Notes: generated by a model from the sequence alone, not told the origin. 64,000 bases of DNA from Eutreptiella sp. 'Long Island Sound 2002' (GCA_964036045.1 OZ038378.1:188294001-188358000); one strand, 5' to 3'. Shown: positions 4,102-44,035, numbered from the stretch's first letter. A program made the numbers and translations.

Positions 4102-4833
4102 GGGGGAACGTTAGTACGCCAGGCGCGCACCGTGCATCTTTTTAAGCCGAAATGCCCCCGACCAACACTATACTAAGCAACCAAGAGCTATGCATCTTGA
4201 TTTGTGCTCTGGATATCCGAGGAGGCAGGGATATGTAGCCACGTGGATTCCTCTCCGCTTTGTGGAAATCATGACAGCGCTGGTTACGTCACCACTTTTG
4301 TTTGCGTCTGCTCATCCTTCTGGTGCTATTGAGGTCAACTGGCCCATGTTATTACACTCCACGTGGGAGACACTGAGGAAGCAGAGGTTTTGTAGCCCAA
4401 TTCAGTTTCAGTTTTGGCTTCAGGTCTGGCACCCCCACTACGGATCATGGGAACACATCCCCCCTCATGTCTGGACTATTGTTGATGCAAGCAACTCAAC
4501 TGCCACGCAGGATGACAGAGTGGATGAGGTTGACGTTTGTGCATTGTGCTCCCAGAAGCACACCACCACAGTTTGTGGCGAATGTAACGGCGCGCTAGTT
4601 TTGTACCAAGTATCCCGACTTTACGCTACCCTAGAGAAGCCCCCCAAGCAGACCAGAATCAACCCCAACCCTTCCTACGGAGCACACAAAATGAAACCAA
4701 AGCTGTGAACCCCACTTCCTCAACACATGTGACATGTACAGATGTTTTGTGCCAAATAGACAGTGCTGTGCCCACAAATGTGTGGGTCAGCACAAAAACT
4801 TTCATCGGGCACGCACCGAGCAAACACTCCCCC
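4102..4833 (+). mobile_element. Non-autonomous TIR element E1 (732 bp), GGGGG-terminal family, PIF/Harbinger-like
   Basis: Left TIR GGGGGAACGTT vs reverse complement of right end GGGGGAGTGTT (9/11). TSD TCA at 4099-4101 and 4834-4836. Direct subterminal repeat GGCGCGCACCGTGCA / GGCACGCACCGAGCA. Confidence 0.85.
4190..4620 (+). pseudogene. Transposase fragments plus Cys-rich finger inside E1
   Basis: HPHYGSWEHIPPHVWTIVDAS is homologous to HTPYGP..WEHIPPH at ~10465-10515. DEVDVCALC...CGEC is homologous to DEAEVCVLC...DECKEHYC at ~11275-11370. Confidence 0.5.
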
Positions 4834-5319
4834 TCAAGGCAGGCTGTGCTGGCCTCAACCCGGTATGACCCAAAGTCAGTGCAGGCAAGACCTTCACCTG
4901 TGCACCACACGATGGTGTACAGTATGATTTCGCCCCGGGGTGATGACGACATTGCAGGCAGCCATGGCCCAGCAACAAAGGAACCAACCTGATGCTGCAG
5001 AGCGGCAGCTTCTTGCTCTGTCGGCATTAAGGGTGGCTTCTCTCATGCAATCGTGATTGGGAGAGCACGAGAGTGGCTGAAAGCCCAATGGCCCAAGGGT
5101 TCCTGAATATGCTCTGCTTCATGTGTGTGCCCTTCCTAAACAAACACACTTACCCGCCCCCTCCCCCTGCGCAACCTACATTGGAACTGCTGAGGCGATG
5201 AAGGCCGTGGAAGGCAGGCGCGGCTGAAGCTAAATGGCAAGTCCACACCTGACCTTTTTGACGCCCCCTGCGCAAGCACTGCCGTGTCCAAGCACGAGAG
5301 CCCGTCTGACCGTTGAATT

Positions 5320-5480
5320 TTTGATCGCGCTCCATTGGGGCAACCTTAATTTGTGATTGCTCCCCATTGGGGCCACCGGGATTTGGGATTGCCCCCATTG
5401 GGGCCACCAGAATTTATGATCGCCTGCCATTGGGGTGACCTGAACCTGTGATTGCCCCCCATTGGGGCGACCCGAATTCT
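5320..5480. repeat. Degenerate ~31-bp tandem repeat (core CCCCATTGGGGC), ~5 copies
   Basis: Repeated ccattgggg cores at ~31-bp spacing. Confidence 0.8.
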
Positions 5481-8025
5481 TGATGTTTTCCTGACCGCTC
5501 CTTTTGCTGCTAGCCAGCAACACGGAGATCAGAAGTATATTTCTTTCCATGTTACCTGACATGGAGAACTTTGCTTTCAGGTCACAATCTGAGTGCACAT
5601 GACACATTTACACTGTGTCCCCAAGCTTGATTGTTACCTCTGTCCCTCACACAGGCGCACCGCATGAAACACAACAACGACAACACCCATGCAATGGTTC
5701 CGGACTGGTACAAAAATTTTGCATCAAATGTTGTGTACACGTGTATCTTGGAAAACTGAAGTTTAGCAACAAATAAATGGACCATGGCAGTACAGAGTTG
5801 GGACATTGTGTATGTCAAGAGTGCGGGGGTCAAGGGGGTGTACAACCCCCCACCGATTTTGCATGGGCTGGGTCACCATGGTCAGATGTAGTAGGTTGGA
5901 CCGGTGCTGCAACCTGCTCAACAACACACGCATGCACGAGCGGCGGCGGCTTTGTTACTTTTTCGTTGTGGTGGCCTTCGCCAAAACAAAGAAAAGGACC
6001 GCTTTGTGGTGCAGGACTAGCTTTTTGGTGCAGGAGTAACGCCCTGCCACGGTCCAAGGAGTCGCTCGATGAACATTACACGTGCATGCCGTTGGCGATG
6101 TTGTTGCCCCTCAACAGCCTGCTGCCACCAGCCCTCGTTCTCCTACTGCCGCACACCACCACCACCCCGGTTGCACCGCCGGAGGCGCCACCACAGCCGT
6201 ACTGCTGCACGTGTACCTGGCCAGTCACAACCGATGGCGTTGTTTGCACGCGGTCCCGGTCATGGTGTGGAGTGGGGCCGTGCAGGCACCGGCCCGCCAA
6301 GGGGGGGGGGTCTGAAAAGTAAAACGTGGGTTGGGTTTTTCAAAAACCCCCCTTTTTTTGGACCCCCTGAGTAATTGGGAAATGGGGGGGGTTTCGGTTT
6401 TACCTATTGTTTGCTTTGTGGCCCCCACTGCCTTGAGGTAGAGTTGCCCCAATAGGTGGAACACATTGAATGCTTGTTGAGTCTGTAGTAAAACGTAGTA
6501 AAACTTTTTTCTTCAAAAAGATTTTTCCACTAGGTAAATTTACCTAGTAAAAAAGAAGAAAAAATTTCCCCTTTCCTAGGACGCCAACTACCCCTCTCCC
6601 CCCTCCCCCCTAGCGCTTGGGGGTACGACCGTGAGATGGGCCGCTACCACTGGCATGTGCTGGGGTTCTACAACAAAATGGGCACACCAGTGGCTACTTG
6701 GCTGAGGACCTTAATGGAGTCTCTCAACCATGCTCCAATAATGGCAGCACCTCCACGGGGGGCGTTCAGACTTAAATCTTGACATCAACCCCCCCCCCCC
6801 GGCTTGTGCAAACCCCCCCTTCCTTAAACTTCTGGGCCCTGTTGAGTGGGGGTAGGGGTACAGGGTCCTTGGGGGGGTTGGGGAGTCCAATGGGGGGATC
6901 CCGGGTACGCCGACATATATACCTCAAAATGATCCGCTCGTTGCACTCATCATTTTGAACACGAATATGTGGAGTTTTTGAAAAAAAATTTCTCCTCGGG
7001 CCCCAATAGCCACATTTGGCTAGGGGGCTGGGGGGAGGTCAGGGTTGATAACTTTTTCTTGTTATGCATGCATATTTGAATTCTCCATAAAATTCTGAGC
7101 ATTTTGAGCATACACATAGAGGGTGAAGTCAATTTTTAACCCCCCCCCCCACCCGTATGCCAAAAAAAGGATTTCTAGTGGCAGGTTTGGGCCAAATGTG
7201 GTCCAGACCTACTCAACACTTTGGACCTCCCGGGGGGGGGGGGGGGTTGAAGATCCGAGTCTGAACGCCCCCCATGAACACCTCCCAAATTCAGTGGAAA
7301 TCCGGTGTGGAGCAAGAAAGTGTGGTGGGAGGTTCATTTGATCTAGTGCATTCAATGGAGTACCAAACCAGGGATCCCTTGGTGATGTCTAGTAGCACTA
7401 GGTAAGCTCCATCACGCCCATGGACTGTGTTTTGCATGTTAGGTACGCCCCATCACGCTCTTGCTCCGTTGACAGGTTATGGCTACACCCTGCGTTATGC
7501 ATGTGCTTTGTCCGTTTTTGCCAGCTTTGTTGTCAGGTACACGCAAGCCGATTAAAAGTGGGGTTAGGGCCGGGGGCCAAATCCAATTTACGCTGTAAAT
7601 TACGTAAATTTTTGTAAATTGCGCAAAAAGTGGCGTGAATTTCTGTAAATTTTTGTAAATTCGGTGTAAATTCGGGAACCCATGTCTTTTGCATGCTACT
7701 AGATGTTGGGAAATATCATAAACACCCCCCCACATTGCCCACATGTGATGTATATTTTTGTTTTTACCATGTTTGTACCATGTTGCTGTTGCCTACTTGG
7801 TACATTGCAGCATGAACTACTACTGAGCGCCAGATTTCGCAAGACGAGGCGCTATACAAATGTCGTTTGTTGCGAGGTGCTTTCAGCGCGGATTAGCAAG
7901 ACGGGGCGCTATACAAATGGTTTGTTGCTACCTGAAGATCTTGCATTCGGAGCAAAACCCCGGCCCGAGTGTAGCGCCAATTTCTTTCTGGGGCGAACAC
8001 ATTCGTTCAAACTTTCTTTCTCCTT

Positions 8026-8425
8026 CCCACGCTTTGTTGCGTGGCCCCTCGAGTTGGGGTTAGGGACTCAAAATCCACGCTTTGCTGTGTGGCCCCTCGA
8101 GTTGGGGTTAGGGACTCACAATCCACGCTTTGTTGCGTGGCCCCTCGAGTTGGGGTTAGGGACTCACAATCCACGCTTTGTTGCGTGGCCCCTCGAGTTG
8201 GGGTTAGGGACTCACAATCCACGCTTCGGTGTGGCCCCCCCAGTTGGGGTTAGGGACTCTCAATCCACGCTTTGTTGCGTGGCCCCTCGAGTTGGGGTTA
8301 GGGACTCACAATCCACGCTTTGTTGCATGGCCCCTCGAGTTGGGGTCAGGGACTCTCAATCCACGCTTTGTTGCGTGGCCCCTCGAGTTGGGGTTAGGGA
8401 CTCACAATCCACGCTTCGGTGTGGC
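8026..8425 (+). repeat. 48-bp tandem repeat, ~8 copies, each containing GGGGTTAGGG
   Basis: Unit GTGGCCCCTCGAGTTGGGGTTAGGGACTCACAATCCACGCTTTGTTGC starts at 8041, 8089, 8137, 8185 and onward. Confidence 0.95.
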
Positions 8426-8564
8426 AAGCTTAGGGCCGACAGGGTAATGGGGTTATGGGTGTATGGGGTCCAGTCCACGCTTTTGGGAATTCCTCATAGC
8501 CACTAGGTTGAATCAAGTATGGGGTTACGTTCAATGTTCTCTGCCGCCTTAGCTTTCTCATGTA

Positions 8565-8900
8565 ATGTGGGCGCGGAAGCAAGACCCGGCTGCAGAGTGG
8601 CAAGAGTTTGCTACCCCTGCTGCTGCTCTCCGCCATGTAGGCACTACAGATGGGACTGGCAATGTGACTATGCGGCAGGCGGACGAGCGGAGCATCCCCC
8701 CAACAGGTATTTTCTGCTGCCCTGCCACCCTGCCTGCCTGCAAGTGCCTCACTTCCCCCCTGCCAGGTTAATGTTTCCTCTTGTTTGCCCTGTTTGCAGG
8801 CCATCCAGAGGATCGTCTTGACCCTGCACAGGGTCTGGAAGCGTGGATCGAGGAGGATCCGGAGGCCCTCGAGTCATGGCTGCGGGGCATCAAACAGTGA
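8565..8900 (+). CDS. Putative two-exon mini-gene (80 aa, unknown function) inside the hAT element
   Basis: Exon 8565-8706, GT-AG intron 8707-8799 (donor AG|GTATTT, pyrimidine-rich TTTGCAG acceptor), exon 8800-8900. Splicing removes an in-frame TAA and gives MWARKQDPAAEWQEF...PPTGHPEDRLDPAQGLEAWIEEDPEALESWLRGIKQ*. Confidence 0.4.
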
Positions 8901-9869: not shown

Positions 9870-10620
9870 TTGAGACACGACTAGGCATTGGCTCCCAATA
9901 CAACGGGCATCTTTTTCGGCCAAAGCCTCACCGGCCAACACTATACCAAGCGCTATCCAAGACGTGCCCACCCTAGGGACCCCGAGAAGGTGTCGGTCAT
10001 GTAGCCATTTTGATTCCTCTCTAGTTTGGAGACGTCAAGAAGGCATGGAGAAGGACACACGCAAGGAAGGCAAGTGCATGCACGGGTGGGTATCCATAGG
10101 TCCTAGCACTGTGAGGGCACGCTATGACCAAGAGTATAAGACATATCAGTGTGCACAAGATGATAGAGTATAGTTAGCACATGTGTTTGCCTATCATATG
10201 TTTCCCTATTAATGTATCATGTTAGCAGTGTTCCTGGTCTTTGTCTTCAGTTTGAAGGCATGGCCGTGGCCGGGCGGCATACTTTGTAGTTTTGGCGGGA
10301 GAAAGCAGTGTCCCCTCTCTTTGCGAGGGGTAGGCCTGCTTTAAAGATACTATATGAACCGGGTGGAGCACCCGCGGTGTAGCATAGCACCCGTGAACTC
10401 ACCTTCGCAGCTTCCGGACTATGTTTACTAAGAAAAAAAAACAATAGTTATTGGAAGCAGGCCCGTCACACACCTTATGGACCATGGACCATGGGAACAC
10501 ATCCCTCCTCATGCTTGAGAGGTTACCAATGCAAGCAACACATAGGGCGTTTTCGCACAGCATGCGCAAGTCGCCAATTATTATGTTGTTTATCCTGGGA
10601 ACACGCCTGAAAACCACCGA
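9870..10620 (+). pseudogene. Scattered fragments of the same Harbinger-like transposase family
   Basis: GHLFRPKPHRPTLY (~9905-9945) matches VHLFKPKCPRPTLY (4130-4175). WEHIPPH at ~10490 matches 4447. Confidence 0.4.
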
Positions 10621-10957
10621 CCTATAGAAGCATGCATGATCAAGTCAAAACAGCATGGGTTGCAGAGTTCAGGACCCTGGGACCGGTGGCAAGCATTTGA
10701 CTTGAAAAAAGAATCCCTGTTGTATTAGCAAGGGCTGTAGGGTGCAGAATTCAGGACCCTGGGATCCGTGGCTACCGGTGGGAAAAACAGCGGAATTTTC
10801 GCACAAGAAAATCGAGGAGGTGATGTTCAGGTTTGCACACTGTGCTGCTAGAAGCACACCACCAGACTTTGTGGTGAATATTTTGTTCTTGGACCCTTCC
10901 GGCGCGTATGGGGGAACGTTAGCGCGCCGGGCGCGCGCCGGGCATCTTTTGTGACCC

Positions 10958-11269
10958 GTGCCCTACCGGTGGACTGTTGCCGTTGATATGTTGGGCCCCA
11001 TTATATGGATTTGCCCCTTGGCCCCCGGGACATCAGCAGATGTTTTGATTTTGGATGGGTATGGACCTTCTCGTACCCGAGGTGATTTCTTTGATTTCGA
11101 AGTTGGGGGCCATGATGGTGCTTATAAGGGCCGGATTCATGTCATTGTGCCATTCATTGGAAGAAAGAATGGCACTTTGACATCCCGCCAACAATGTTAC
11201 AATGGCGTGCACGGGTGGTATAGGGCACGCATTGAGCAGCTGTTTGCTCGGTTGTGGCACGCAAGATGA
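10958..11269 (+). pseudogene. DDE_Tnp_4 (PIF/Harbinger/IS5-clan) transposase catalytic C-terminal half
   Basis: VAVDMLGPIIWI..APGTSAD ... DGAY.G ...P ... LTSRQQCYN..HGWYRARIEQLFARL follows the D...D..Y...N..H...R..IE..F..L pattern of this family. Confidence 0.7.
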
Positions 11270-11389
11270 GGCAGAGGATGAGGCAGAAGTGTGTGTGTTG
11301 TGTTGCCAGATCGCTCCACCGTCGCAGTTGGTGATGAGTGTAAGGAGCACTATTGTACTGAATGTATTGACACCCACACTTGTGGGACC

Positions 11390-11555
11390 AATGTTATGAT
11401 GCAGCTCTACTGTTCGCGATACCTCAATAACGCCTATCGCTTCTACTGGAGATCGATACGGTTGTGCTATCCTAACCCCCCATTCTCCCAACTTGCTAAG
11501 GTGTTGACCAAGATCGCCCTTAAAGGAGCGAGAGTGGTACTGTGTACCCCAGTTT
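11390..11555 (+). pseudogene. DIRS-type DNA N6-adenine methyltransferase (NPPF) domain fragment
   Basis: YPNPPFSQLAKVLTKIALKGARVVLCTP resembles the YANPPF...VL.KI...GA.V.L..P motif of the MT domain in DIRS1-group tyrosine-recombinase retrotransposons. Confidence 0.65.
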
Positions 11556-11789
11556 GCAACTTTCTTGAGCTGGGGCAGTTTGGGTCACCTAATTCTAAGG
11601 GCGTTTCTAGGGGGTGTGCTTGGGAGCTCTTCGGGGGGAACATAGTCTAAAAGTAGCGCGCCGGGCGCGCGCTGGGCAAACATTCCCCTTATGTACTTCC
11701 CTGCCGTGCATGCCTGCCTTCAATAACTATTGTGCAAAATGCATCAAAATACGGACTGGCTGATGCAAGTCATTTGGACCGCAACACCA

Positions 11790-12005
11790 CATGTCTCTAA
11801 GCAAAGCGGCTACGAAACATTGCATTCTCGGGGTCCCCAATAGCGGTTGATAGCTCGATGGTTGGGTGTACAAGTACTGGTTTACACAGATGATTTGGCG
11901 ATGATTACCCTTGGCAGGGGCAAGGAAGGGGGCAGGCACACCCTAGAAGAGCCCCGTGATCTCCAGGGTTGTTGGGGTTTGCAGTCAACAACAAGAAACC
12001 GGCGG
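11790..12005 (+). pseudogene. Reverse transcriptase fragment, DIRS/LTR-type
   Basis: GVQVLVYTDDLAMI, followed after a frameshift by LGFAVNNKK: the YxDD motif plus the downstream LGF.IN.KK motif. Confidence 0.6.
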
Positions 12006-20000: not shown

Positions 20001-20803
20001 TTCGAGGAAGATGGGAGCAAAAAAGCAGCGGATATTTTGTTTCAAAGTTGATTCATGAAACCAATATGAAGGCAATAGAGATACATACAACAGTGAGCAA
20101 GGAATAAGCGGCCAAAAAACTGTATGTTTGCAGCTTTTTATGCATTACCTTGAAAGCTCCATGGCGGTGCCGGTGTTTGGAGGTAGAGGTCATACATTAT
20201 TGTTCAAGCAGTCGTGCCTTTTGCTAAGCTGTTGACCGCCATTGTGAGATGGTAAACTTTAGAGGATTGAGATGTCATACAAAAGCTAGAGAAAGGGCAA
20301 GCAAACGAGGTGCAGATGTTGTGAGTGTTAGGCAAGGGCAAATGCGAGGCACAAGGCCAACCAAATATCCCTTTGTTTGCTTTTCGGTGACGTGCTTTGC
20401 CGTGTGTGCATGGCCTCTACACACATGCTTGATCTCACACAAGCACATCACTTGTTTTTTGAACCACAAGCCGTGAACCATGGTAATCCATGGTGGATGG
20501 ATAATCATGTCCCAAATGAGGGTATTCATATTTTCACTGTTTTGCACCTCCTTCTCAAGGCACTATGCTCATGAACAATGATGAGCAGATTAGCAAAGCA
20601 AGCAATTACGGAAGGAACTCATCAAGGCACTATGTGTGACAAGAATGAATGAATGTATCATTGGCGATGAGTTGCAAAACATTTTTAGATTCTCCTTTTT
20701 GCCAGCATTAGGCAACAAAGCACCCCTGAATTTGGCAGCATGGGCTATCTAGCCTAAGCAAATAACTTTCCTGCAAGTCAACCAAATGCAAACCACCCCC
20801 AAC

Positions 20804-21038
20804 AAATTGCCCTGGGCCCCAGTAAATTGCCCTGGGCTCCAGGAAATTGCCCTGGGCCCCAATTAATTGCTCTGGACCCCACTCAATTGCCCTGCGCCCC
20901 AGTAAATTGCCCCGGGCCCCAGTAAATTGCCCTGGGCCCCAGTAAATTGCCCTGGGCTCCAGTAAATTGCCCCGGGCCCCAGTCAATTGCCCCGGGCCCC
21001 AGTAAATTGCCCCAGGCCACAATAAATTGCCCTGGGCC
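20804..21038. repeat. 20-21-bp minisatellite (AAATTGCCCTGGGCCCCAGT), ~11 copies
   Basis: Directly visible tandem array. Confidence 0.95.
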
Positions 21039-23090: not shown

Positions 23091-24291
23091 AGGGAAACAC
23101 GACAAGCGATGAAATTCCTAGCAAGCAAAGCACCTCGTGGCCAAAGCACCTAGCAGCCAGTACATAGTCCCCATGGGTGCCAGAGTACCCATATTGTCAC
23201 CAAATGATGACCCAAACCCATCCCATAGCCCAGAGAAGGTTTTTGGAAAAAATCAAAATTCGAAAATTTCCAAGTGCTGTGCCTGTTTGCCTTCGCCAAT
23301 GGCGGTGTGCGCATCTGTTGGGTGAGTGTTGGGTGAGGCAAACTTTTTGTTTCAGAAGCCCCTGCCTTTAGCACACACGTCCGCCCTATGACCGAACGCC
23401 GAACCCCATGTCACCATAGATTTCAGGTCTTTTGAACATGACGGTCATGGACTCCTCCAGATGCCCCAGCCGCAACGCCCTGTGTGATCAGTCTGTGAGC
23501 CCCTTTTCAATGGAAGCGTTCTCCTATGAATTGATTGAGGGCTTCAGTTTTGGTGCTGGAACCAGAAACTGCAGCCGCGGCGACTGCGGCGTCAACACGA
23601 CTGCCTTGTGGCCCGATGACGGCTCCGAATGTGGTATGCCTTCTCGGAGTCCGTCGGAGTGCTTTGAGCTCGATGACGCTGGGTCTCCACCAAACAAGGC
23701 GGACTGGACTCATGCCCGACGCCCAGCGCTGTTTGGTTGGGGCAGTCGGAAGTGCCTTGCCATTTGTGAAGAGGCGGACCTGGCCCATTCCCTTGAGAGC
23801 TGGTGCGGATCCGATGATGCAACAGATCTGGCGCCTGCAATTTCATCGGTGTTCTCGCCTCAAGTGCGCGGGGTCACCAACTTCTAAGTGCGTTGCAACT
23901 GCGACCATAGCAACCACAGAAGTGAGGACGAGAGACCACCGCATAGGATGACGTCATCTTCTCAGGTCGTTTTTCGGTGTTTGTTTACGTTTGTTGAATT
24001 CTTGAACAACCGTCCAACGGATGTGCAAACCCCATCAGCTGGATGACTACTGCCCCCAGCTTGTCCCGGTTGGTCTATTGGCTTACAGCCGCCCCTCCGA
24101 AGCAGAAAGATGATGTCTTGTCCCTGTGCTCGGACACGGAGGTGGCGTCCGGACAGGCCAGTATTAATTGATAAAGCGTCTCTGTTGGAGCGAAGCGCCG
24201 CAAAAAGCGCCACACTGGTCTGCTTTCAATACTCTTGAGTGGCAGATTGAAAATTGCTTCTTTGTTGTTTTTTCGTTGAATTGCCATTTTG

Positions 24292-24428
<137 letters not shown>

Positions 24429-25009: not shown

Positions 25010-25057
<48 letters not shown>

Positions 25058-26000
25058 TCCGACCCCTGTAAGTACACCTGCTACACCCCACACTGTTCTG
25101 CTCTTGGCTTCAACCTGCATAGAGGGCGCGACGGTCAGGGTACAGGGAACAACCCACATCCAACCGAGTGCCCTGGACAACAACTGGTGTTTAAAATTGG
25201 GCCCCTCATGACCCCTGCCCTCCATGACCCCTCCTACCTGCCTTGCATCTTTGCAGGCGTCCTCAGCAACGCCAGGCCGTGGTGCCAATCATGGGGCGGG
25301 GAACTCTTGTCTGTTGCAGTGTGGCAGCAAGTGTCACGGTTGTCAGGGTTCCCCTCAAGAAAAGTGGCAAGGGCGGCACATGCAGCCATCGTCTGCAGCC
25401 TTTCCACCAGTCCCCATGACCATCACACGATGGCCCAGTACATGTATTTCATTACACCACACTACACTATCAACATGACGCTGTGGTGGCTGAAAAAACA
25501 TGCACACTGGCGCGGAGAAGCCTACAGTAGTTGGGTCATCCACCCCTCCCTGTCACCAGACGGCACAATAGGGTCCTGGAACCACGATGCTCCCCTCCTG
25601 CAAGACGTACAACAACACTCCCGCCCTCAGGGTCACCTCTGTCACCTGCCCCCCTGCCATGAAACTGAACAAATTGTGTGTGCGTGAGTAGGCGGTCACG
25701 CTTGTCTCCAAGAACTCGAAGCAACATGTAAACGGTGCTGTGCTTACAGGTGAATCATCTTCCCTCTCTCCCTCTCTTTGCGAATTTGGTGCCCAGGGGA
25801 GTGGCTGACCATGAATCAACCTGAGGGGGTAGATGAACTTGCAACTTGCTCCCCATGTCCCCATCCTCGCTACAGAACGGCGCCTAGCCACATGACTTTC
25901 CCTGTTTTGATGGCCTGATGAGGTGTTTTGAAACCAGAACCTTTTGAATGCCAGCCTGTGCTCGTCAACATTGGTCATCGGTTCGATGGTTTCTCTCACA

Positions 26001-26031
<31 letters not shown>

Positions 26032-28253
26032 CATGTTTGTGTGTGTGTGTGAGTGTACACCTGTTCGTCTCGCTTTAATCGTGTGTGTGTACATATGTGT
26101 GCATGCGTAGTGATGAGTCTCAATCCCCCCTCCATCCTCTCTGTTTCTGTGGCGCACTGCTTTGGTCTGATTGGCAATTGTTGTGGTCAAGAATGTGAGA
26201 TGACATGTGTGTCGGCCGGTGGTAGTGGGGAAGATGTGCTGGGGGTCATGCCTCTGCGAAGACTTACTCAGCCGACGACAACCTTCTGCTTGGAACTACA
26301 ACCCATTTCTGAACGATTGGACGCAACTTTGAGGGAATGTTTGCTGCATTTCGGCCTAAACCCCTTGCCTTTGTGTGGCGCATGTGAACGGGATCCCCAG
26401 GGTCTTACGTCGTCGTTTTACCTGCCTCGGGCCTTGCTTGCGCAAGGGGTCGGGGAGGGGTGCAAGTAGTGAATGTTCTCAGCTCTCTGGAATACTGAGC
26501 ATCGAGCCCATCTCATAAGCACCAGCCCATTTCAATTTCAGACCATTAGATTCATTAACACGGATCCCAATCAGCTGCATTTTCCCGTCAGTTCACTGGT
26601 TCAAGGCTGAATACCCAAATGCAACTGTGACCCTTGTCTTTGCGAATGCAAGTCTGTTTTGTTGCCCATCATTGTGATCAGAGGACAGGCACACACAGGG
26701 GGCAAGAAACAGCAGGCAGGAAGGAAAGAAGCTGACGGCATCGCTTGGAACACACTTGACCCTTAGGCCGACCGCAACAAGACAAGTTCCAGACCCCCTT
26801 CTTCCCCATCACTCTGGCCTCCGAGGGCCGCAATGCAGGCCATCCTTAGTGTGTGCCTTTGCAACAGCAGGGGGGTGACCCCTTTGCAAGAACAGTGCTC
26901 TTTGTCAGAATAACACAAGGTGTTGGGTTGTTCCGCAACTGTTAGGTGGAACAATCGAATTGGAAGCTCCATTTTCTGGTTGAGAATGAAGATCAAATTT
27001 GTTCTGAGATTTGGGGCTGGACCCCCCCCCCCCCCCGATTAGTACCCACACATGCACCCATGTATTTCCCCAGGGCGGGGGGGGGTCATTTTGAGTTCTT
27101 CAATTTTAATTACAAGGTTGGATATTGAGGTTCTCCTGTGTGTATACCCCTTGGACAATGCAGTGTTTTTGGGGCATTGTTGTGTAATTGGAATTTCTTG
27201 CATCTAAGGCAGTATGCATGTCGATCAGGATTCCTGGGAACAGGTCCTTTGTCTTTCCGGGGGGGAGGGGGGGTCGGGAACTGTCACTTTGGCTATGTTC
27301 CCCTAGGGGTGTGGGAAAACTGTCGCGCGCAGCTGGGTACTATTCAAGGGGGTGTTTTCCTCCCTTGCTTGACAACACTTTTGCTTACTCTCTGTTTGAA
27401 ACTAACCAGTCTTCCGATTCGTAAGGCCGAATGGGTGCCAGCTTTGCGCTTTGCAGGGGTTAAATATTATTTTTCTGGTGTGTCGAGTTCAGGTCTCAAT
27501 CAGCAAGCTCCTTTCTGGAGGGACCATATGTGTATACTCCTTGAGCGCCCGCTTTGGTGCACCCATGCAGATGTACATTGATAGTAGAGCACCCCAAACA
27601 AGAAGGGGACACATGGGAATTTGGCTGCGATCATGTTGACACGTACCCAGCTGGTACTGTTGTCAATTTCTAGCGTTCAGAAGGCAGTGTTGTGTTTGCC
27701 AAGATTGTGGGCCCCTCAAAGCGTGGTACCCACTCCCAGTCTATCACATATGAGCGCTCTGGTACTATGGTGACACATACAGGAAAAAAAGGGCAAAGTT
27801 CCTAGCCCTCCTCGTCAGTCAACGGCTAAGTGGGCTAACAATCTGGTCTAAGGGCTGAAATTGTCTGTGCTCAGTAAGCTGTTGCACAACAACAACGTGC
27901 AGAACAGTGCAGGACTGAACGCCAATGCGCTGTGTGGCAGGCAGTAAGAGCAAAGCAAAGCATCGTTGAGGTCCACACAACGTTTGTGGGGGGTGCAGTG
28001 GCTCGGGTGGCCCGTCCCTGCCGCCCCCCTTGAGGGGAGCAATGGTTGGTTCTGACCGACGGAATGTCCCCGCCAGTCTTCGTTTGTGGGGAATTAATGC
28101 CAAAGGGGGGGAGGATCTGGGTGGGTGGGTCTGCAGTCTAGGACCCCCCCTTTCACTTATAATGATGGCTTGGGTGGGTGGTCACAGAGCAATTGTCGAA
28201 AACAATTTCACGGCTCAGTCTGTACATGGTCCCGAGCAGTGGTGTGTCGGTCA

Positions 28254-30700: not shown

Positions 30701-31543
30701 GTACCCCTTTAACAATGGCTAGCTGACAAAACGGCAAGAAATCTGGGGCTAATGAAGACCCAACCTGCGCCGCCCAACGCACACAGTCCGCCGCCCACGG
30801 TCCATGATACTGCTTGCGATTCTTGACGAATGACACCATAGCTACGCAAAAATGAATTTGGCATACGCCGGCAGTGGTTGCATCTGCAGCACCTCTCCAC
30901 TACGCACTTCCGCAACCATGCTAGGGCCCAACCCCGGGGTGTGACCAGCAATGGAAGTGTGTAGGTTTGTGCACCCAAGGGCTAATCATGTGGGCGGCGG
31001 TGCAGGTGTTCTAGCGTTTGCGGTGTGATGCGGTGTTCAAGGATGCTTTACCAAACCTGCATGAGTTTGTGTCCAGATGGTAGTCAGTGTTACTCTGGGG
31101 GGTCACATCCGATGAAACTTCTTTGCATAGACAGGAAGCAGTGCATGTCTACCATGAGGTACAGAATTTTCTGCATGGACAGTCAATGTTTGCTGGGGGG
31201 GGACTGTGGCCCCGCAGAAAACAATCGTACCACATTGCAGCACAAGCTGCCCAAATGGATAAAATGGGCATCGCTATTGCCAAATATGCAGCGAGTCATT
31301 GATGAAAAGCTAGCCAACGGTTTTATGCCTACTCTATGTGATACTCGTGTCCTCTAGGTCCTTGATGGTTGCTCTATATCATAACCTTCTTCTCAAGGCC
31401 CCTGCTGGCTGTTCTATATCATACTCGTGCCCTCCAGGCCCTTGATGGCCATTCTATAGCATACTCGTGTGCTCTAGGCACTTAGTGGCTGTTGTGTATC
31501 TTACTCTTGTCCTGTAGACCGTTCATGGTTGTTCTATATCATA

Positions 31544-32183
31544 GGGGGCGCCTTAAGCGAAGTGCGTGTGCAGTGCGCGCACAGTGCAACTATTGTTGTT
31601 GTTTGGTAGTAGGTTTTGATGCATTGGGGATCTGTCTGTTTTGGATGTTCACCGTGTTTCACCCATTTCTACTTTTTTGCACACATTTTTTGCCCATTTC
31701 CACCACATCTACTCTTTTTCTCGGTTGATGGATATGGTGATACACTTTGAGGGTGCCTGCTACAGGACATCATATTTCCCTCCTCATTCCTCAGGCCCAC
31801 TTTCTCCATGGATCTCAAAACTGGGGATAGGGTGTTCTGCACCCGCTCCAATGGCCCGCGACCTCGTGCCACGGTGGTTGGGACGGCTGAAGACGGACTC
31901 CTCCACTTGGAATACTCCCAAGATGGGTTGAGAGTGGTGAATTGGCAATGCAAGATGGAGTCCATCTCCTTTGCCATCCCAAGACTTGCCACCTGACTGC
32001 CCTCCATCTCCGCTGCCCAACACACAATCAAGTTCCCCCCCAAAGGCCCTTGGTCCTTCACCACAAGAACCGGGAAGGTCCCCCTCAAGAGGTCCCCTCC
32101 AGTCCACTTTGGGTTGCCTAATTCTAAGGGTGTTTCCAAGGGGCGTGCCTAGGGGCTCTTCGGGGGGAACATAGTCTAAAAGT
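31544..32183 (+). mobile_element. TIR element E3 (640 bp), GGGGG-terminal family, right terminus missing
   Basis: Left end GGGGGCGCCTTAAGCG is identical to E4. The 3' module CTAATTCTAAGGG...GGGGGGAACATAGTCTAAAAGT is shared with E2 and E4. Flanked by ATA/ATA within the tandem repeat unit (TATC-ATA-CTTG). Confidence 0.8.
31808..31996 (+). CDS. 62-aa Tudor/KOW/SH3-like microprotein ORF (cargo of E3)
   Basis: Intact ATG-to-TGA ORF MDLKTGDRVFCTRSNGPRPRATVVGTAEDGLLHLEYSQDG..., with the G.RV....G....ATVV.......HLEY beta-barrel pattern. Homologous to 30290-30469. Confidence 0.45.
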   Translation: MDLKTGDRVFCTRSNGPRPRATVVGTAEDGLLHLEYSQDGLRVVNWQCKMESISFAIPRLAT

Positions 32184-35100
32184 ATACTTGTCTCCTCCAG
32201 GCCCTTTCTGGCTCTTCTATGGTGCTCGTTGTGTGCCTATGACTGTCATTGGGCACTCCGACATAGCCAAGTCACAGGGCTTTCCTGCAGCACGGCTCTC
32301 CCCCCTAGTTGAATGGGGGTGACATTGGACAACCGAGGTCATCGTGCACCCCGGTAGTGTATTTTGTAGAAGAAGTTTAGACCTTCGGAGCTCGTGCACG
32401 GCGCAAGGAGTAACGAGCCATCAAGGGTCTAGAGGACACAACATCAGGGGCCTAGAGGACACTAGTACGATCTACAATATCCATCATGGGCCTAAAGGAG
32501 ACAAGTATGAAATAGAACAACCATCAAGGGCCTAGAGGATACCATACGAGGATACGAGAGGAGACGGGTATTATGTAGATTAGCCACCAAGGCTGTAGAG
32601 GATACAAGTATGACCAAGAACACCTATCAAGGGCCTACAGGACACGAGTATGATACAAAACAACCATCAAGCACCTAGAGGACATGAATATGATATGCAA
32701 CAACCACGGATATGATATAGGAGAGCCATCAAGGGCCAAGAGGACACAAGTATGATATAGAACGGGTATCAGAGGGCTTGAGGAGACGGGTATGATGTAG
32801 AACACCCATGATGGACCAAGAGGACACAAGTATGATATTGAACAATATATGGGCCCTTGGTAGGCTGCCGCGGCTTTTCCAAGCCCACCATTCAAAGTAG
32901 GGAGGTTGTTATTGGAGATGATTTCATGTAGGGGGGCAGGCCAGGGCATGGTGCCTGGGAGGAGTGTCAAGAGGCACACATGCTCAGGCAGTGGAATCGG
33001 CTTGGACATCCAGTCCATTATCATCCCATCGGATGGGGGATCCCGTGAGCTGGACGCCATCCGTGAAGTGCAGGGTTGGACGTTTTGGGGACCCCGTGAG
33101 TTGTTTAGCGCAGGTGTACCCCTGAGGATTGGTGCAGAGACGTTTGTTAAGCATGCCCCCTCGCGACGGAAGCCGTTTTCGTTTGAGGAGGAGGCTGTGG
33201 ACGATTTCGGATTCCACGGCCAGGTGGCGTTCCTTGTAAGACCGGGCCTTTGTCAACTAGTTGAACACTATCAACCACTGCATAACGTGTGTAGTGGCTA
33301 CGAACCCCCCCCCCCCCCCCGGCGCAGCCGCGTCGGATGGGCCTGGACAGGGGGCCTCCACCACCGGGTTTCGCTTCAGCAGATACCCCTCCCGGGGAAG
33401 GTGCGATTCGGATGGGGCAGCGGTACCACTGCCATAACAAGTGCTGCACATCGGGAGCTGCGGTGGGTGTGATGTCCTCTGGCAAGCCTCACTAGTATCA
33501 AAACCTCCCGGTCTGGTCCTGTGGTCCAGTGGCTCGACCCTGACCTCATGCATCATGTCTCGGACTGTGCACCACTGCCCGTGTGTCTGTGATGCCATGG
33601 CACAGTGTGGGATCTGCAATACTGCCACTGCTTGCGGGTGAGCGCAGATACTCCACTGACTGCTAAGCGTAGGGCACACAGTGCCCCCGGTTAGTACCAT
33701 GAAATGACATGGTGTGTGTGTGTGTGTGTGTGTGTGTGTACATGTGTATGAACGACGATGGAACACAGAAGGGGGATACACAGTGCGCTGAAAAGAGCAG
33801 AGTGTGTCCGGATTCACTGTGCCTTGGTCGCCCAGGTTCAGCGGTGTCCTGTTACCCCCGAGTCCAACGCGGGGCAGCCTGCGACGCCGTGACAGGTCAG
33901 CAACAGGGTCTCAGAGCCCGTCGCTTCAGGCAACGTCAATACTAGTGCTGGACACATTTCCATCCATCCCATCCCCCCCTGCAGCGTCCCCTGCATGGAG
34001 ACATGCCTCCCCCGCATGAAGCTGTAGGTTACCCAATTCATGTTGTACATACTCTCTGGGCCTAAATGCCCACGCACACCGGAGGCCACATGGCCTAAAC
34101 TCAGTCCGGTGTCAGCAACAAAAACAAACAATACATAGGCCCTTGGTAGATAAAAAAAATGGTCGAGATTTGTCGTTTTATAAAACCTTTTAAAATCCTC
34201 AACACTCCGCCGTCAGCGCCCGGCGATCCCGATCGCCGCACCCGGCGATTCAAATCTCAAATTTGAAAAAATTCTGAGATCCTTTGAGTAAAATCGCCCT
34301 GCAAACCCCGATTTCATTACAGTAACCCCAAAAGCTGGATCTATTCCTATCCGAGTGAGGTAAAATCTCCGAAGTTACCTTGAAGACTGTGCGAGACGTT
34401 GGGGGGCACCCCGCTACACATAGGTGGACCATGGGGAGTAGGAAGGGAGGGGGGCGGGGGGTTATACCCACCTTAATCCATGATCCGGTTCATTTTCAGG
34501 GGGGTTGGGGGGGTTACCACAAATTTTTCAAGCAAATATTTCAACAAAATTTTTTTCAACAAAATTTAATATAAATTTCCAAACTGAAATTTGTGTCGAT
34601 TTTCTACCTTTCATCCATCCGGCCTTTCTCCCATAATTTGTTGCGTTTTTCGTCCCATTTTGCCCCCACCTTCTGTCTCATGGTGAGTAACTTTCCTCCA
34701 CCAATTCAACAAGCATCGCACATCTCTCTGTGGATTTCACCATTGCAAGTGAGATGCACTCCTTTGGTTGGGGGCTTCATGGATCAGAGGGATGCTTGTG
34801 GTGGTTTGTGGCTCGCCCATGGGGGCCCCACATAGGACGAGGACAAGCCCCCTCCCCGGGCGATGGGTAATTTCATATCTTTCATAAATTTCGTAAATTT
34901 CACCACTTTTTCCACCCCGAAATGTCGATTCCTAAACTTCATGAAAATTTTGAATCCTAGGTTACCACCACTCCGATCGATGCGGATCCATTTTTAATGC
35001 ATGTGATCCATGTTTGCCAATCGGTGGTGTACATTGTTACGATGATGTAAACAACATCGGAATTCTGTTTTTTTTTTATGAACTGTTCTTTAGCATGTTT

Positions 35101-35771: not shown

Positions 35772-36522
35772 GGGGGCGCCTTAAGCGTAGTGCGCGCGCA
35801 GTGCACGCGCAGTGCAACTATTTGGGCGTCTGGCTGTACTGGAGACCCATGCTTTGAGATCATAGGGGCATCATTGTTACCCTGTTGCGTAGGTTTTGAT
35901 GCTTCTTCCACATTGGGGATATAGCATTTTTGGATTTTCACCCAATTTCACCCATTTCCACCCGTTTTCACATTTTATTTGTATTTGCAAGGGCTATTTG
36001 GACCATGTCTTTGTGCAGGATACTACCCATCTCTTTGAATTGGGCTATGCCTGTGATTCCAAGTCAAGTCGCATTCGAATTGGCCATCAAATTCTCGTCC
36101 GGCCGGTCGCATCAACTTACGAGGGTTGATGTGGCTGGTGAAGCGAAAGACCCGCTATAGGGTGAGTAGTTCAACTCCGAATAATCTCGTAGCAGAAATT
36201 GCCTCCGCGGGGCTGTCACCACAACGGTCGTCGTATTATGTCGACAAAGGTTTCGATGCACATACGAAAGGAGGTACCCCCGGCCGCCTCCCCCTCTACA
36301 TTAGAGGGTGTTGAGGGTGGCAACCAATACGCTGTTCATGGCTTTTCCAGATGTGCATGATGTGTGTTATGTGAAGGGAAGGTAGTTTGCAACTTTCTTG
36401 AGCTAGGGCAGTTTGGGTCACCTAATTCTAAGGGCGTTTCCAAGGGGTGTGCCCTGGGGCTCTTCGGGGGGAACATAGTCTAAAAGTAGCGCGCAGTGCG
36501 CGCGCAGTGCAAGGATTCCCCC
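35772..36522 (+). mobile_element. TIR element E4 (751 bp), GGGGG-terminal family
   Basis: TIR GGGGGCGCCTT vs GGGGGAATCCTT. TSD TAA at 35769-35771 and 36523-36525. Direct subterminal repeat TAG(T)GCGCGC.CAGTGC.CGCGCAGTGC at both ends. The empty site CCCTAATC-TAA-GATCCGG resembles the intact repeat near 34470. Confidence 0.85.
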
Positions 36523-38480: not shown

Positions 38481-38744
38481 CCCGGGCCCTTGATTCATAC
38501 ACCATGTACCTATGGTTGATTCAATGAACGCAAACACGGGCAATGCTCAACAGGGGTACATTTTAACCAGAAAGCTGAGAGTCACATTGGCATGGTCATT
38601 GTAGGCTCCGTGAGATTGTACGTATGCAAATGCATGTATGCGTGCTCATGCCTGCATCTTACTCCTGGCACATGCTCTTTCGCATTGCAAGTGTATATCC
38701 TTTGTGGACACATCGTGAATGATTCATGAACTGAAATTATCACA

Positions 38745-39360: not shown

Positions 39361-41739
39361 TTGTACATATGTCCGCAGTCCGCAGTCCCATGTGCTAGTG
39401 GGGGGTCGCTGTAGGCGAAACGCCAACGTCTCTGGAAATTTGCCTTTTTTTCACCGTTTGCCCCATTTTTGAGGGGTTCTCGGGGTTTAGAGCACCATTC
39501 GACCCCGAACATACATGAAATATCCCCTGGCTTTGGGTTTTCTTCATTATTCTGCACTTGCATTGAAGCTGGTTTGGATGCCATGTTGCTAAAGGGCACA
39601 TGGGAATGTGAGTTTGTTGATTTTTGTAGAGAATCGCCTGGTGACCGTCGGCGATCGATACAGGCATTGGGGCATGCACGCTTATGAGCCCCATATGCAT
39701 GCGTAACGTTCATGCTTGGTTGTTCATTTTTTCTGTGGAAGTTGTCGAATTTCTGAAGCGATTTTCCAGTCGCGGCCAGCCGCGTTGAAGTTGCCAGTGC
39801 AAGTGAAGATTTTAATCGTGAACAAAAGAGATCCTGGCCTGATTGCCACTGATGCAAATCCAATGCACCGTCCCGGAACAGTCCCGGAACAGTCCGGGGT
39901 AGTATTGGTGTCGATCCAGAACAGTTTTCGGTGAATTGCTCAGAACAGCTCAGAATAGGACCACCCACATGCACATTGCGCAGTGCGCAGTGCAGAGCGC
40001 ACAATACATTTGCACACGTGTTGTCCCATTCCATGCTTTGATTGCCAGCAAACATTCAGGGGTGGAGAGGGGGGGGGGGGCGGCTGGACCCCCCCCCCTC
40101 CTCCGCCTCCGGTCTTCTAACACGTCCCTCGGGGTGGGTCCTAGGAGACCAGTACGGAACAGTTTTTTTCGGGGGGGGGGGGGTGGCCCAACAGCGTTGC
40201 GTGCCAACCGTCCCACAGGGGGGGGGGGGTGTTAGAAATCTGGGATTTCATGCGAAACGGAACGGAACGGCGTGCCTGGCACCCATGGCCGTCGCGTTCT
40301 CCGCATGGTTGCTGGTGGATTGGGTTTGCAAGTGAGAAACAACATCCTTACGCCCCTCCATGCATCTGTAGGTGATTGAGGAAGTTGAATTTTTTTTTCG
40401 TTTCGGTCCAATGTCTTGCTCATAGGCAACACTCATGGTTGGTTGCCGTACTGGTGGCACGCCACGCCACCCATAGCCGGAGAAGAGGAGGTTGGTTCCA
40501 TTGCGATGCAGTGTGATTCCATCCAAAACCAAGGCCTAAAGGTAAGTTGCAACACAAGCCACTTGTTTTTTGTGCAGGGCAAGTTTGAAGATCAAGGTCA
40601 TGGTACGAGCTCTTGGGGAACGTGGGATATCCAGGGCTAGAGCCCCTATGTGCGCCACGCAGTGCCGAAGGCAACGAGCAAAAGCTTGTGCAGATGCTGC
40701 TGAAATCTCATGTGTTTCCCAAAAGGAAATGTGTTCTTTCACAGTGCATTGAAGAGTGAGGCACTCCATTGTCTGGGCAATACTCAAACAAACGAAACAC
40801 ACTACATTTTGGCCGACACCAGGTCAAGACTAGGATGCAAAATGTGACATACTTGTCACTTGGCAATCCCACCAATCGACGCAACGAAGGACCGTAAGAA
40901 GAACCACAATTTTTGCTTGCTGCCAAGCCGAGATGTTACGTGTTGTTAAGCCCTAAATTGGGGACTAGCCAGAAGGGTTGTGGGTTTTCTTTCAACTTTC
41001 TTGATCCATTTCAGGCTGGGGATGGGGGGTTGTACACCACCATATTTCTGTTGGCGCGCATGCCTATCTAATCCACTTTGATCCACTTTGGCCAACTGGC
41101 CAATTGGCCAACAAGTAGAACTTACCCCAGTGTCTTGTTTGGAATACAAAGTTCGTTGTGCATCAAGAATTCTGGTGTGCATCGGCTGCAGGGGTTTTCT
41201 TGGTTAGCTCCTTTCGGCATTGTCAATGATCTCAATGTACTTTTTGTCATGTGCCTGTCTCATGCATATGAAAGTCCATGGTTGCTCTACATTGGAAGGT
41301 TGGCGTAAGACTGGGTGAGGTTGGGGCTCCCATGGTAGTTCACGTTGTGTGCCATGGCTTTCGGTGGACTTTTGAGCTTCAATCCATTTAAGGAGGGGAG
41401 GGAGGGAGGGGTGCATGGGGGTTTACCTCCATGTCCGATCCGATCCGTGATGCAACCCAATTTTTTTTGGGGGGGGGGCTTTGGGAGGGCAAGGGTTCTC
41501 CACCTTGATCCCTGGTGGATCAGATCGCCGAATCCCGATTAGTTTTTTTTTGTTCCTATCCACCACCACCACCACCATTAAGCCCCATTGCATCGGCGGC
41601 CAACATCCTCTGAAGAGCCGTGTCCGGTTGACCGCCCAATATCAATGCGTTGGAAAACAAAGTTGCCTTTAGTAAGTACATGAATTTGGAGATTGTCCCA
41701 TGATGCTGGCCTGTAGCAAAATTTTCTTTTCCGCATGTG

Positions 41740-42400
41740 GCGGGTGGGGGGCTGGATACGGGCACGTTTGTGGGAATCCTGACCGACGGAGCGTAGATTT
41801 GGGCACTATGCGTGCTCATTTCATCCCCACTACGATCGTTCGTGCCGCTTCAAGTTTTAGTTGCATGGTTTGTATGGGTGGGTACAAGTTGGGACAAGTC
41901 AAGTCCAATGATGTGCCAACCTGCTCACAGAAGCCACCATCTGTGACAAGTTTGTCTGGTCCTGATGGCGAACAATTCATCGGGAGTGCAGAGGAGTCTG
42001 AGGTGCGTTTGTGTAGGGTGGTTTGGTTGCGGCTTAGCCATGTGGAGAAAGTTCGTGATGTTGCACAGTGCAGTCCAAGCCCTGCTCGGGTTGGATTGTG
42101 ATTAACGAGTGTGAGATCGCTGCCACACCAAAGACCATTGACAAGTGCTTCGTAGACGTGAACTCCCTCCCCTCCTACAAATTGCCCCCTCCGATTCTTC
42201 CTGGTGTAGGGATGCCCGAAAACTCCCAAGGCAAGCTCACACGGAGAGGTTCGAAGTAGAGAGGCAAAGGAGCATTGGATCGCAGCTTTGCGGAAAAAGG
42301 TGTATTGTTGGGTTCCCGTGAACGCCCTCCCCTCTTCCCTCATGACACTGTACAACTCCCTTGGCGTTGATTTTGTGCGCACTTCGCACCAACCCTCGTG
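41740..42400 (-). pseudogene. Merlin/ISXO2-like (IS1595-type) transposase remnant
   Basis: VFG..YTRKNRRG..V...GVHV, RNQTTL, KLVTDGG and frameshifted THSAQIYAPSVRIPTN match the order of RK..RG / R...TL / TDG / NHS....TN motifs. Confidence 0.5.
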
Positions 42401-42804
42401 TCGTCCTCAGTAGTGACACTGCTTTGGGGTTTGCATCACGGCACGTTTGCACCGGTCCATGCGGCTTGACCTTGCAGTGCAGGATGGGCGAACCAGCAAA
42501 ATCACAGATCTAGTCAAGTGCTGTGTGGGGGCCAAAGATTTGACATTGCTGCAATTGAGTATTTTGAACGCTCTTGTACGCCGACAGGTTTTGTGTTGGG
42601 CATCCCCTCGGGCTCTGCCACATCCTTGAACGCTTTAATGCAAGAGCAAATTTTTCCCAACACCAATGTTTTCCCATGATGATTCCAATGATTTTGGTAC
42701 CAACAAATTGACTTTGGTGGAAAGATTTTGATCCTTAAATGGGAATCCAAAGGAAATGTGCCACAGGGGCCCGCGCGGCTTGTCATGAGCGGATACGAAG
42801 CGAT

Positions 42805-43355
42805 GGGGGTGGCTCAAGTCACGGTACGTCACGCTACGTCAAGGTAATGAACAATTGATGCCCCGAGACTAATTTCGTCATAACGGGTTGGGTAGAGTGT
42901 GCAGGTGTGTAGTTCCGTGTAGTTATGCCCTAAGGGTGAAAGGAGCCTAAGGGTGAAAGGAGCTTGACAGATGAGGAGAAGAGGATAGGCATGGTGATGG
43001 TTGAAGCTAGGCCTCCAAAGATCGACACCCGTAGTGGGAAACCATTTCCTGATTTTGCTGGAGCCGCTGCAGCACTTCGATCAAGCCCATACAATTGGCC
43101 ACTACCCTATGAGACCTTGCTGGAGTCCCTTAGGGCTGTGTGTGAAGGAAACAAGGGGCGTGACAAGGAGAGGCACAAACAGTCTGCAGAAATAGCAGAT
43201 TTGGCGGCCTAGGGGCACACTTCGGTCCCCAACCCAAGTATCCTGGCAGGAGGCTTTTGCATGGTTCATATCAATCAAATTTTCACACTTTTACTTCACT
43301 TTACTTTTTTACTTCACGGTACGTCATGGTACGTCATGGTGTATGAGCCACCCCA
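42805..43355 (+). mobile_element. TIR element E5 (551 bp), GGGGG-terminal family
   Basis: TIR GGGGGTGGCTCA vs TGGGGTGGCTCA (11/12). TSD GAT at 42802-42804 and 43356-43358. Direct subterminal repeat TCACGGTACGTCA at both ends. Contains the open frame 42964-43212. Confidence 0.85.
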
Positions 43356-43466
43356 GATGGGAGTTGGCAAGACGGCAGGAAGCGGTTACAAGTGGTTACT
43401 GTCAGTGAACAAAACCGGTTGGGGTGTGTGACTGGGGAAGGGAGGCTGAACAATGCGTCACCCCTA

Positions 43467-44035
43467 GGGGGCGTTTTGCGCGCTGTGCCCGCGTTGTGCA
43501 CAAAGTTTGTTTCTAGTGCATTGGTATGTGTTGTTGTGCATCCTTTTCTATAGGTTTGTGGTATCTTTTTCGAGATTTGCCCAGTACATATCCAGTGGCT
43601 CTACTGTAAGTGCAAACAGTTCTGATTCGTCCTCCTCATCAGCCGGCAGCACGGAAATCACTAGTTGAGCCTCGCCCCAACTGTTGTTTGCACTCCATAC
43701 TTAGGCAGTTTTCCTGTCTTCTTTTCATAATAAGTGCCATGGACGGGCATGAAATGCAACGAGCCTCAGAATCACATCAGCCTCACGCTTCCGCTGAGCA
43801 GAGACTCGCGGAGCAAGCCAGAGAAACTCAGCAACTACGAGAGCAGCTCGCCCGGGCGCCTGTGAAGGAAGGTCCGACACTCCCTCCCCTGTCCGTTCCA
43901 GAGCTAAACAAGGAAACATCAGGCTGTCCAACGTTGTGGGGGTGTAGTATGGTTTGTATCGGCAAGAATATTGCCAATTGTAGCAAAAACCCCCAATTTT
44001 TTCCTGTCATGTGCGCGCTGTGCACACACGCCCCC
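43467..44035 (+). mobile_element. TIR element E6 (569 bp), GGGGG-terminal family
   Basis: TIR GGGGGCGT at both ends. TSD CTA at 43464-43466 and 44036-44038. Direct subterminal repeat TGCGCGCTGTGC. Carries the coiled-coil-like fragment MDGHEMQRASE...QQLREQLAR. Confidence 0.85.

Follow-up and report, generated by a model that had tools for sequence, protein, structure and literature searches.

The window examined here is a 64,000-nucleotide stretch of DNA from Eutreptiella sp. 'Long Island Sound 2002' (GCA_964036045.1 OZ038378.1:188294001-188358000), located ~188 Mb along a 201-Mb chromosome in a 2.28-Gb eukaryotic assembly. A 21-mer of the Euglena spliced leader has 3,600 matches in this genome against 0 for its reversed control, which speaks for a Euglena-type source. 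Between positions 4,102 and 44,035 it holds six short elements with G-rich left ends, designated E1 to E6 (Table 1); L0xx denotes further loci taken from the same genome, and P0xxx denotes predicted proteins. A first-pass annotation made from the sequence alone had described these elements as one Harbinger-driven system that shuffles gene fragments, with different cargo in every copy. All six were found where it had placed them, and the interpretation reached here is a different one. The six elements are very likely copies of at least five separate non-autonomous families, each of the size of a MITE (miniature inverted-repeat transposable element), that belong to one abundant PIF/Harbinger-type clan. 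The interior is fixed and particular to each family, copies number in the hundreds or thousands after amplification (E5, which is low-copy, excepted), and insertion produces a 3-bp target site duplication (TSD). Judged by their similarity to transposase-bearing relatives, the interiors that can be traced appear to be leftovers of an autonomous parent, namely its leader, a Tudor-like open reading frame (ORF), part of the DDE core, a Cys finger, and the 3′ region.

The GGGGG start ascribed to the elements was seen in all six. The CCCC(C) right end holds fully for E1, E4, and E6, which terminate in CCCCC, while E2 ends in CCCCT and E5 in CCCCA; the right terminus of E3 is absent, as had been noted. 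Three further copies of the E2 family were compared and give a consensus end of CCCCC, which indicates that the window copy carries a C>T change at 11689. E3 stops at ...CTAAAAGTA (32184), and alignment with a complete member of its family (L030:2686-3428, TSD AAT), in which two subterminal units are followed by GGACTCCCCC, puts the absent portion at ~35 bp, comprising the units and CCCCC. This copy sits between copies of a ~143-bp tandem repeat (31341-31517 and 32442-32845) that are 73-80% identical and lie in opposite orientations. Both the opposed flanking repeats and the absent terminus could be explained by an inversion that broke at the right end of E3. The window copy of E1 carries an inverted portion of ~200 bp (4588-4789; query 487-688) that begins midway through the Cys finger, extends as far as the first right-hand unit, and matches on the opposite strand in all 40 relatives scored. 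Short terminal inverted repeats (TIRs), as found in PIF/Harbinger elements, are present: E2 pairs GGGGGAACGTT with AACATTCCCCC, E5 has the 12-bp pair given in Table 1, and E4 and E6 have just GGGGG plus scattered matches.

Table 1. Elements of the clan, their parts, and adjacent transposase debris in the window (positions counted from the first letter of the window)
Feature	Position	Strand or orientation	Description
E1	4102..4833	+	Old non-autonomous copy with E1/E2-type ends; TSD TCA; interior is 3′ part of transposase gene
Transposase debris	10440..10909	+	Older and decayed (PPYGPWEH motif, first half of finger); insertion target of E2
E2	10910..11689	+	Young chimeric non-autonomous family; TSD TAT; last base C>T
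E2 left subterminal units	10922..10943	+	2 x GCGCGCCGGGC
E2 DDE_Tnp_4 transposase core fragment	10958..11266	+	Pfam PF13359, E=1.5e-4
E2 transposase C-terminal Cys finger	11291..11395	+	..CDECKEHYC.ECIDTH..; read against P0025 and P0028
E2 foreign insert	11396..11550	+	Dam-like (N6-adenine methyltransferase) domain fragment, NPPF motif; retrotransposon-derived
E2 right module	11551..11655	+	Common to E3, E4, and transposase-bearing E3/E4-lineage copies
E2 right subterminal units	11656..11677	+	Oriented as the left ones
Transposase debris	11706..11939	-	Similar to 10440..10909; right beside E2
E3	31544..32184	+	Abundant-family copy; lacks right terminus (~35 bp) and ~50 bp after position 51; no valid TSD
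E3 Tudor/SH3-like ORF	31808..31993	+	62 aa; N-terminus of clan transposase gene; 57% identity to P0039
E4	35772..36522	+	Abundant-family copy; TSD TAA; 1-218 parent left leader, 539-751 parent 3′ region
E4 left units	35794..35815	+	GCGCGCAGTGC, ACGCGCAGTGC
E4 right units	36489..36510	+	2 x GCGCGCAGTGC, oriented as left
E5	42805..43355	+	Low-copy; TSD GAT; 12-bp TIR GGGGGTGGCTCA / TGAGCCACCCCA
E5 10-bp units	42819-42838 and 43314-43333	direct	TCACGGTACG-type
E6	43467..44035	+	Abundant-family copy; TSD CTA; lacks ~95 bp after position 44
E6 units	43478-43499 and 44013-44023	direct	GCGCGCTGTGC

Whether interiors are fixed or variable was judged on the best 40 genome copies per element. The top 40 copies of the E4 family are full length at 94-97% identity, and those of the E2 family span positions 1-779 at 98-99% identity, a level that would make E2 the best candidate among the families for recent activity. 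Genome copies of the E3 and E6 families are collinear as well (92-94% and 91-96% identity, respectively), and the E1 family is older, with 72-83% identity and one fixed layout apart from the inversion in the window copy. Two unselected flank elements (L009:2575-3269 and L036:658-1346) proved to belong to collinear families with 92-98% identity, and the outer element of L014 is 93% alike to L028:2882-3644. E5 gave 44 first-look candidates and is modular, in that its left, interior, and right parts can be separated; its interior module (154-440) occurs at other loci at which the E5 end modules were not reported. Altogether, interiors are collinear in seven of the eight element types searched genome-wide. 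Collinearity among copies with common termini is the very observation that the first-pass annotation had named as contradicting its claim of different cargo in every copy, and that claim does not survive. The interiors of the six window copies differ because the copies belong to different families. Describing these interiors as largely unrelated is accurate for the six as a set but passes over a right module of ~80-140 bp common to E2, E3, and E4 and a left leader common to E3 and E4. A 19-mer from this right module has 6,116 matches in the genome and its control has 0, which bears out the high copy number that had been predicted, and a 24-mer across the junction of the E2 finger and Dam fragment has 977 matches at up to two mismatches (control 0). 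A constraint on size had also been suggested; no evidence points to one other than the size range normal for MITEs (509-780 bp).

On C1, C2, and C3, the outer chromosome parts are densely populated by copies of E2 and of the right module, and the middle sparsely. The dense zones of C1 extend over 0-26 Mb and beyond 141 Mb, and the window itself lies in a dense zone. Pairs of elements with identical flanks repeat ~20 kb apart at L009, L011, and L012 (C5: 55.20, 55.22, and 55.24 Mb) and recur at several sites on C7 (L019, L020, L026, and L027). These recurring pairs are segmental or tandem duplications of bigger blocks that carry clan elements.

The insertion behavior of the clan was assessed by pairing E3/E4-type ends 300-3500 bp apart in the sampled loci, which gave 34 pairings, 26 of them proper (adjacent or nested). 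A perfect 3-bp TSD flanks 25 of these 26 pairs and the remaining pair has a single mismatch, where chance would give a match in 1 of 64 pairs. Two of the 26 are nested insertions, each with its own 3-bp TSD; at L025:1398-2659 and L014:949-2433, an E4-family copy is nested within another clan element and the TSDs are separate. Elements of the E1/E2 type show the same 3-bp TSD behavior as those of the E3/E4 type. In the window, five of the six copies carry the 3-bp TSD characteristic of PIF/Harbinger: the TCA, TAT, TAA, GAT, and CTA recorded previously are confirmed, and the ATA assigned to E3 is a coincidence and not a TSD because that copy lacks its true right terminus. TAA and TTA together account for 10 of the 26 TSDs against ~3% expected by chance, and the TSD letters are ~13% G+C against ~52% G+C in the genome. 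Further triplets include AAA, AAT, TAT, GTA, TCG, CTC, ATG, and TGG. The Harbinger preference for TWA targets is enriched in the clan, yet relaxed. The search pattern proposed earlier, GGGGG...CCCCC pairs with equal 3-mers at 400-1000 bp, gave two matches in the window against four in a mirror control. Since the plain pattern does no better than the control, support for the elements comes from the family copies.

A Harbinger-like transposase had been proposed as the driver, and this is supported: fragments of a DDE_Tnp_4 transposase are present in E2 and E1. The DDE_Tnp_4 catalytic domain (IS5-like) is a hallmark of PIF/Harbinger, and the genome has at least 150 matches to it above the Pfam cut-off; P0001, P0005, P0025, P0085, and P0086 exceed this cut-off (24.8 bits) with scores of 27.7-33.7 bits. 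When the DDE plus finger ORF of L016:611-1180 was used for a word search, 112 proteins were returned, all from one ENA source. The full set of clan-related and Dam-related proteins numbers 232 and covers roughly the last 330 transposase residues at the C-terminus and one N-terminal piece. When the clan proteins were mapped back by tblastn, they covered positions 113-604 of E1, 28-738 of E2, 441 of 640 bp of E3, 22-218 and 539-709 of E4, and 462-569 of E6. The traceable interiors mostly come from the gene and untranslated regions of the parent transposon itself and are not the captured coding fragments that had been suggested. In E2, the middle of the DDE core (~90-93% identity to P0024, P0025, and P0028) is followed by a deletion of ~75 codons and then the Cys finger, while E1 retains the last ~60 codons of the transposase, a stretch that takes in the PPYGPWEH motif and the finger's first half. 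The identity between the E3 ORF and P0039 extends over the first 58 residues of the latter, a protein whose Tudor/SH3-like N-terminus is followed by a DDE C-terminus and the finger. In E3 and E4, the left ~200 bp correspond to the leader found at the start of P0002, and the last 213 bp of E4 correspond to the 3′ region of a transposase-bearing copy, L016:611-1491, which ends with E4-type units and ...GATTCCCCC and is flanked by TTA. For E6, the right 108 bp correspond to the tail of P0085, which is transposase-bearing. In L028, a further deletion derivative carries the DDE core and finger behind a GGGGGCGC left end and the leader.

The 156-bp insert of E2 has another source. It encodes MMQLYCSRYLNNAYRFYWRSIRLCYPNPPF... 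with a weak Pfam Dam match (E=0.012), and a word search with it returned two groups, E2 copies at 93-98% identity and singletons at 75-88% identity. The singletons comprise P0149, P0157, P0167, P0194, and P0153; several have a retropepsin-like DTDA..IG motif upstream, and four give weak sub-threshold Pfam Dam matches (P0153 at 25.7 bits), with none for P0194. By these features the singleton group is retrotransposon polyprotein, and E. gracilis is reported to have long terminal repeat (LTR) retrotransposons that bear DAM (bioRxiv 10.64898/2026.05.21.726589). A second host of the fragment is the outer element of L025, a 509-bp family whose ORF (P0127) belongs to a cluster of 68 members. The Dam fragment in this family is longer and less diverged, with a start 16 codons further upstream and a 3′ junction that it shares with E2 (..VVLCTP joined to VCNFLELGQ). 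At both ends the units are CAGTGC in the L025 element and CCGGGC in E2, where the E3/E4-lineage right module adjoins them. The identical junction in 977 copies and the common 3′ junction show a single capture event. The fragment was copied later from one family into E2 with the termini of the recipient kept, a pattern to be expected if the template is switched while an excision gap is being repaired. The chain from retrotransposon to mini-family to E2 thus offers a traceable interior exchange between families, for which template-switch repair is the mechanism we infer. No host-gene donor was found for any interior traced, and the sole foreign piece traced is retrotransposon-derived. Shuffling of gene fragments, as the first-pass annotation had it, comes down to one traced piece of another transposable element that was captured once.

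The remaining coding potential is sparse. An 82-aa ORF in E5 (42964-43209) shares 51-76% amino acid identity with the short proteins P0234 and P0235 in a word search, and a HMMER search of 1.84 billion representatives returned five short proteins (72-102 aa), namely the ORF itself and four others at 44-74%. No Pfam domain, long or named relative, or donor gene was found for it among these representatives, and it may genuinely encode part of a repeat not yet described. The E6 ORF has no Pfam match and an Atlas value of 0.79 with low recognition, and a genuine domain is improbable there. No Pfam or Rfam family matches the interiors of E4, E5, and E6. Rfam gave no match for the whole window at the gathering threshold or for E4 and for E5 plus E6 at a permissive setting, which indicates that the interiors are not known RNA genes, ribozymes, or heads of short interspersed nuclear elements (SINEs). 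Because the elements have 3-bp TSDs, TIRs, and transposase remnants and give no RNA-family signal, solo LTR, SINE, and retrozyme readings were ruled out.

The same-direction subterminal motif described previously is real in E2, E3/E4, E5, and E6, usually with two units per end. The units are 10-11 bp long and lie in tandem ~12 bp in from each terminus, with one direction common to the left and the right. Their types are GCGCGCCGGGC in E2, GCGCGCAGTGC in E3/E4, GCGCGCTGTGC in E6, and the 10-bp TCACGGTACG in E5, and left and right types are matched in all 11 elements examined, which represent four unit types. Under rotation, the E2 and E3/E4 units are self-complementary at 10 of 11 positions, the E6 unit at 8 of 11, and the E5 unit at 6 of 10. 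The orientation of the E2 and E3/E4 units is therefore defined by one base, and a protein that binds as a symmetric dimer would barely sense it. The direct arrangement is unambiguous in E6 and E5, which have zero reverse-orientation matches at up to two mismatches.

A mechanism that would account for the clan has the families arise by internal deletion plus template switching in the repair of the excision gap, after which clan transposases would mobilize the short families in trans. Recognition would proceed through the ~12-bp terminal sequence together with the family-specific 10-11-bp tandem units, which would present themselves one helical turn apart and in the same direction at both ends. 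A more specific proposal treats the units as a family-specific address code for a single-gene Harbinger-type transposase, proposed to have a Tudor-like N-terminus, a Cys-finger tail, and no Myb helper. Under this proposal the two ends are non-equivalent, interiors are swapped by template switching, and foreign coding DNA is occasionally transduplicated; we offer it tentatively, as a possibility with rather less than an even chance of being right.

Several points weigh against reading the six elements as parent-derived families of one clan. Transposase binding of the units and an origin in gap repair are both inferred, E5 is not described by the label of an ordinary high-copy family, and the link between families and parent is drawn from partial copies (L016 and L028) and predicted proteins. 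Additionally, positions 219-538 of E4, 154-440 of E5, and most of 45-461 of E6 have no match among the 232 proteins, and any of these stretches could be foreign DNA. Some of them might be foreign, each captured once by the founder of a family and then amplified, as is documented for the Dam fragment in E2 and L025, and the occurrence of the E5 interior module apart from E5 ends fits such a history. However, the limited span of the protein set makes a parent-derived or non-coding origin equally possible, the stretches give no Pfam, Rfam, or Atlas signal, and the relatives of the E5 ORF are short and unannotated. Capture at the level of families is accordingly a serious alternative for these stretches, and an unlikely one. 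A much stronger form of capture is known from the Pack-TYPE elements of plants (Pack-MULE, Pack-CACTA, and Pack-PIF), in which the interior is captured from host coding genes (PMC8903248). Such a system would have a Harbinger-like transposase move size-constrained shells that each take up a new host gene fragment and so shuffle genes. The clan resembles it in being non-autonomous, with TIRs and TSDs and no functional transposase, and in that E2 and the L025 family hold non-transposase coding DNA that is transduplicated on moving; the six neighboring copies also differ mostly in their interiors, and interiors have moved between families. Yet interiors are constant from copy to copy in nearly all element types searched and mostly the parent's own, the E2 capture junction is identical in its 977 copies, the captured DNA came from a retrotransposon in one event that was amplified ~1,000-fold, and the 1.84 billion representatives contain no long or named relative of the E5 ORF. 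With no host-gene fragment found and cargo constant between copies, the elements are not Pack-TYPE in the sense of PMC8903248, and a gene-shuffling system of this kind is very improbable.

Assignment to another DDE superfamily with short TSDs, such as Zator, ISL2EU, or CACTA/Chapaev, deserves consideration given that GGGGG termini and a target that is not strictly TWA are atypical of Harbinger and that no Myb-like gene was shown in the transposase-bearing copies read, which are partial. A second gene encoding a Myb/SANT/MADF-like protein defines canonical PIF/Harbinger (PMC9710019). Against this, the Pfam cut-off for DDE_Tnp_4 is exceeded both by the internal transposase fragments and by the transposase-bearing copies that have these ends, the TSD is 3 bp and not 2 bp, and TAA/TTA are strongly over-represented among the TSDs, all of which leaves another superfamily with hardly any probability. 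The same slight standing applies to the idea that the elements are spliced out as nonconventional introns of the Euglena type, in the manner of 'introner'-like MITEs. Those introns have TIRs, short flanking direct repeats, and a suggested MITE origin, but their reported motifs are CAG at +3 and CTG at -8 (PMC12501133) and not GGGGG/CCCCC, and nothing in the window puts element copies inside exons.

Membership of the six elements in non-autonomous PIF/Harbinger families agrees best with what is known of Tourist-like MITEs and other PIF/Harbinger derivatives such as mPing/Ping. The likeness lies in deletion derivatives of ~0.5-0.8 kb that keep the ends of the parent, in a 3-bp A/T-rich TSD, in copies that far outnumber autonomous elements, and in mobilization in trans by a DDE_Tnp_4 transposase, which for the clan is presumed. 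The clan differs from Tourist-like MITEs in its GGGGG...CCCCC termini with a true TIR of only ~5-12 bp, in the relaxed target (TAA/TTA in 10 of 26), in tandem 10-11-bp units that are specific to each family and face one way at both ends, and in a transposase that has a Cys finger at its C-terminus and, at the N-terminus in some lineages, a Tudor-like ORF. For the units, the nearest comparison is Harbinger3_DR of zebrafish, which has subterminal binding sites for its Myb-like protein, as summarized in PMC9710019. Both systems have short repeated subterminal motifs that are likely docking sites for an element-encoded DNA-binding protein, and the clan units differ in being 10-11 bp, tandem, family-specific, and of the same orientation at both ends. 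The Euglena literature on Harbinger, PIF, or MITEs yielded no description of these elements, and the clan is apparently undescribed there; in the published E. gracilis assembly, 32.7% of repeat elements are unclassified (PMC11252322).

The gene-shuffling system is not upheld and what stays is transposon annotation, comprising at least nine short families in one clan with exact ends, TSDs, and copy-number anchors. This is ordinary transposon biology with two modestly unusual features, the family-matched direct end units and the exchange of interiors between families. The matched units of common orientation make a testable case for how a Harbinger-type transposase separates its own ends from those of sister families.

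Elsewhere in the window, tandem arrays occupy 8027-8425, 20797-21038, 45943-46230, 47931-51043, and 55979-56618. Among them are arrays with periods of ~48 bp, 20 bp, and 55 bp, one of 160 bp to 1.1 kb, and one of short period. Dinucleotide microsatellites recur at 24290-24428, 25010-25058, and 26003-26056.

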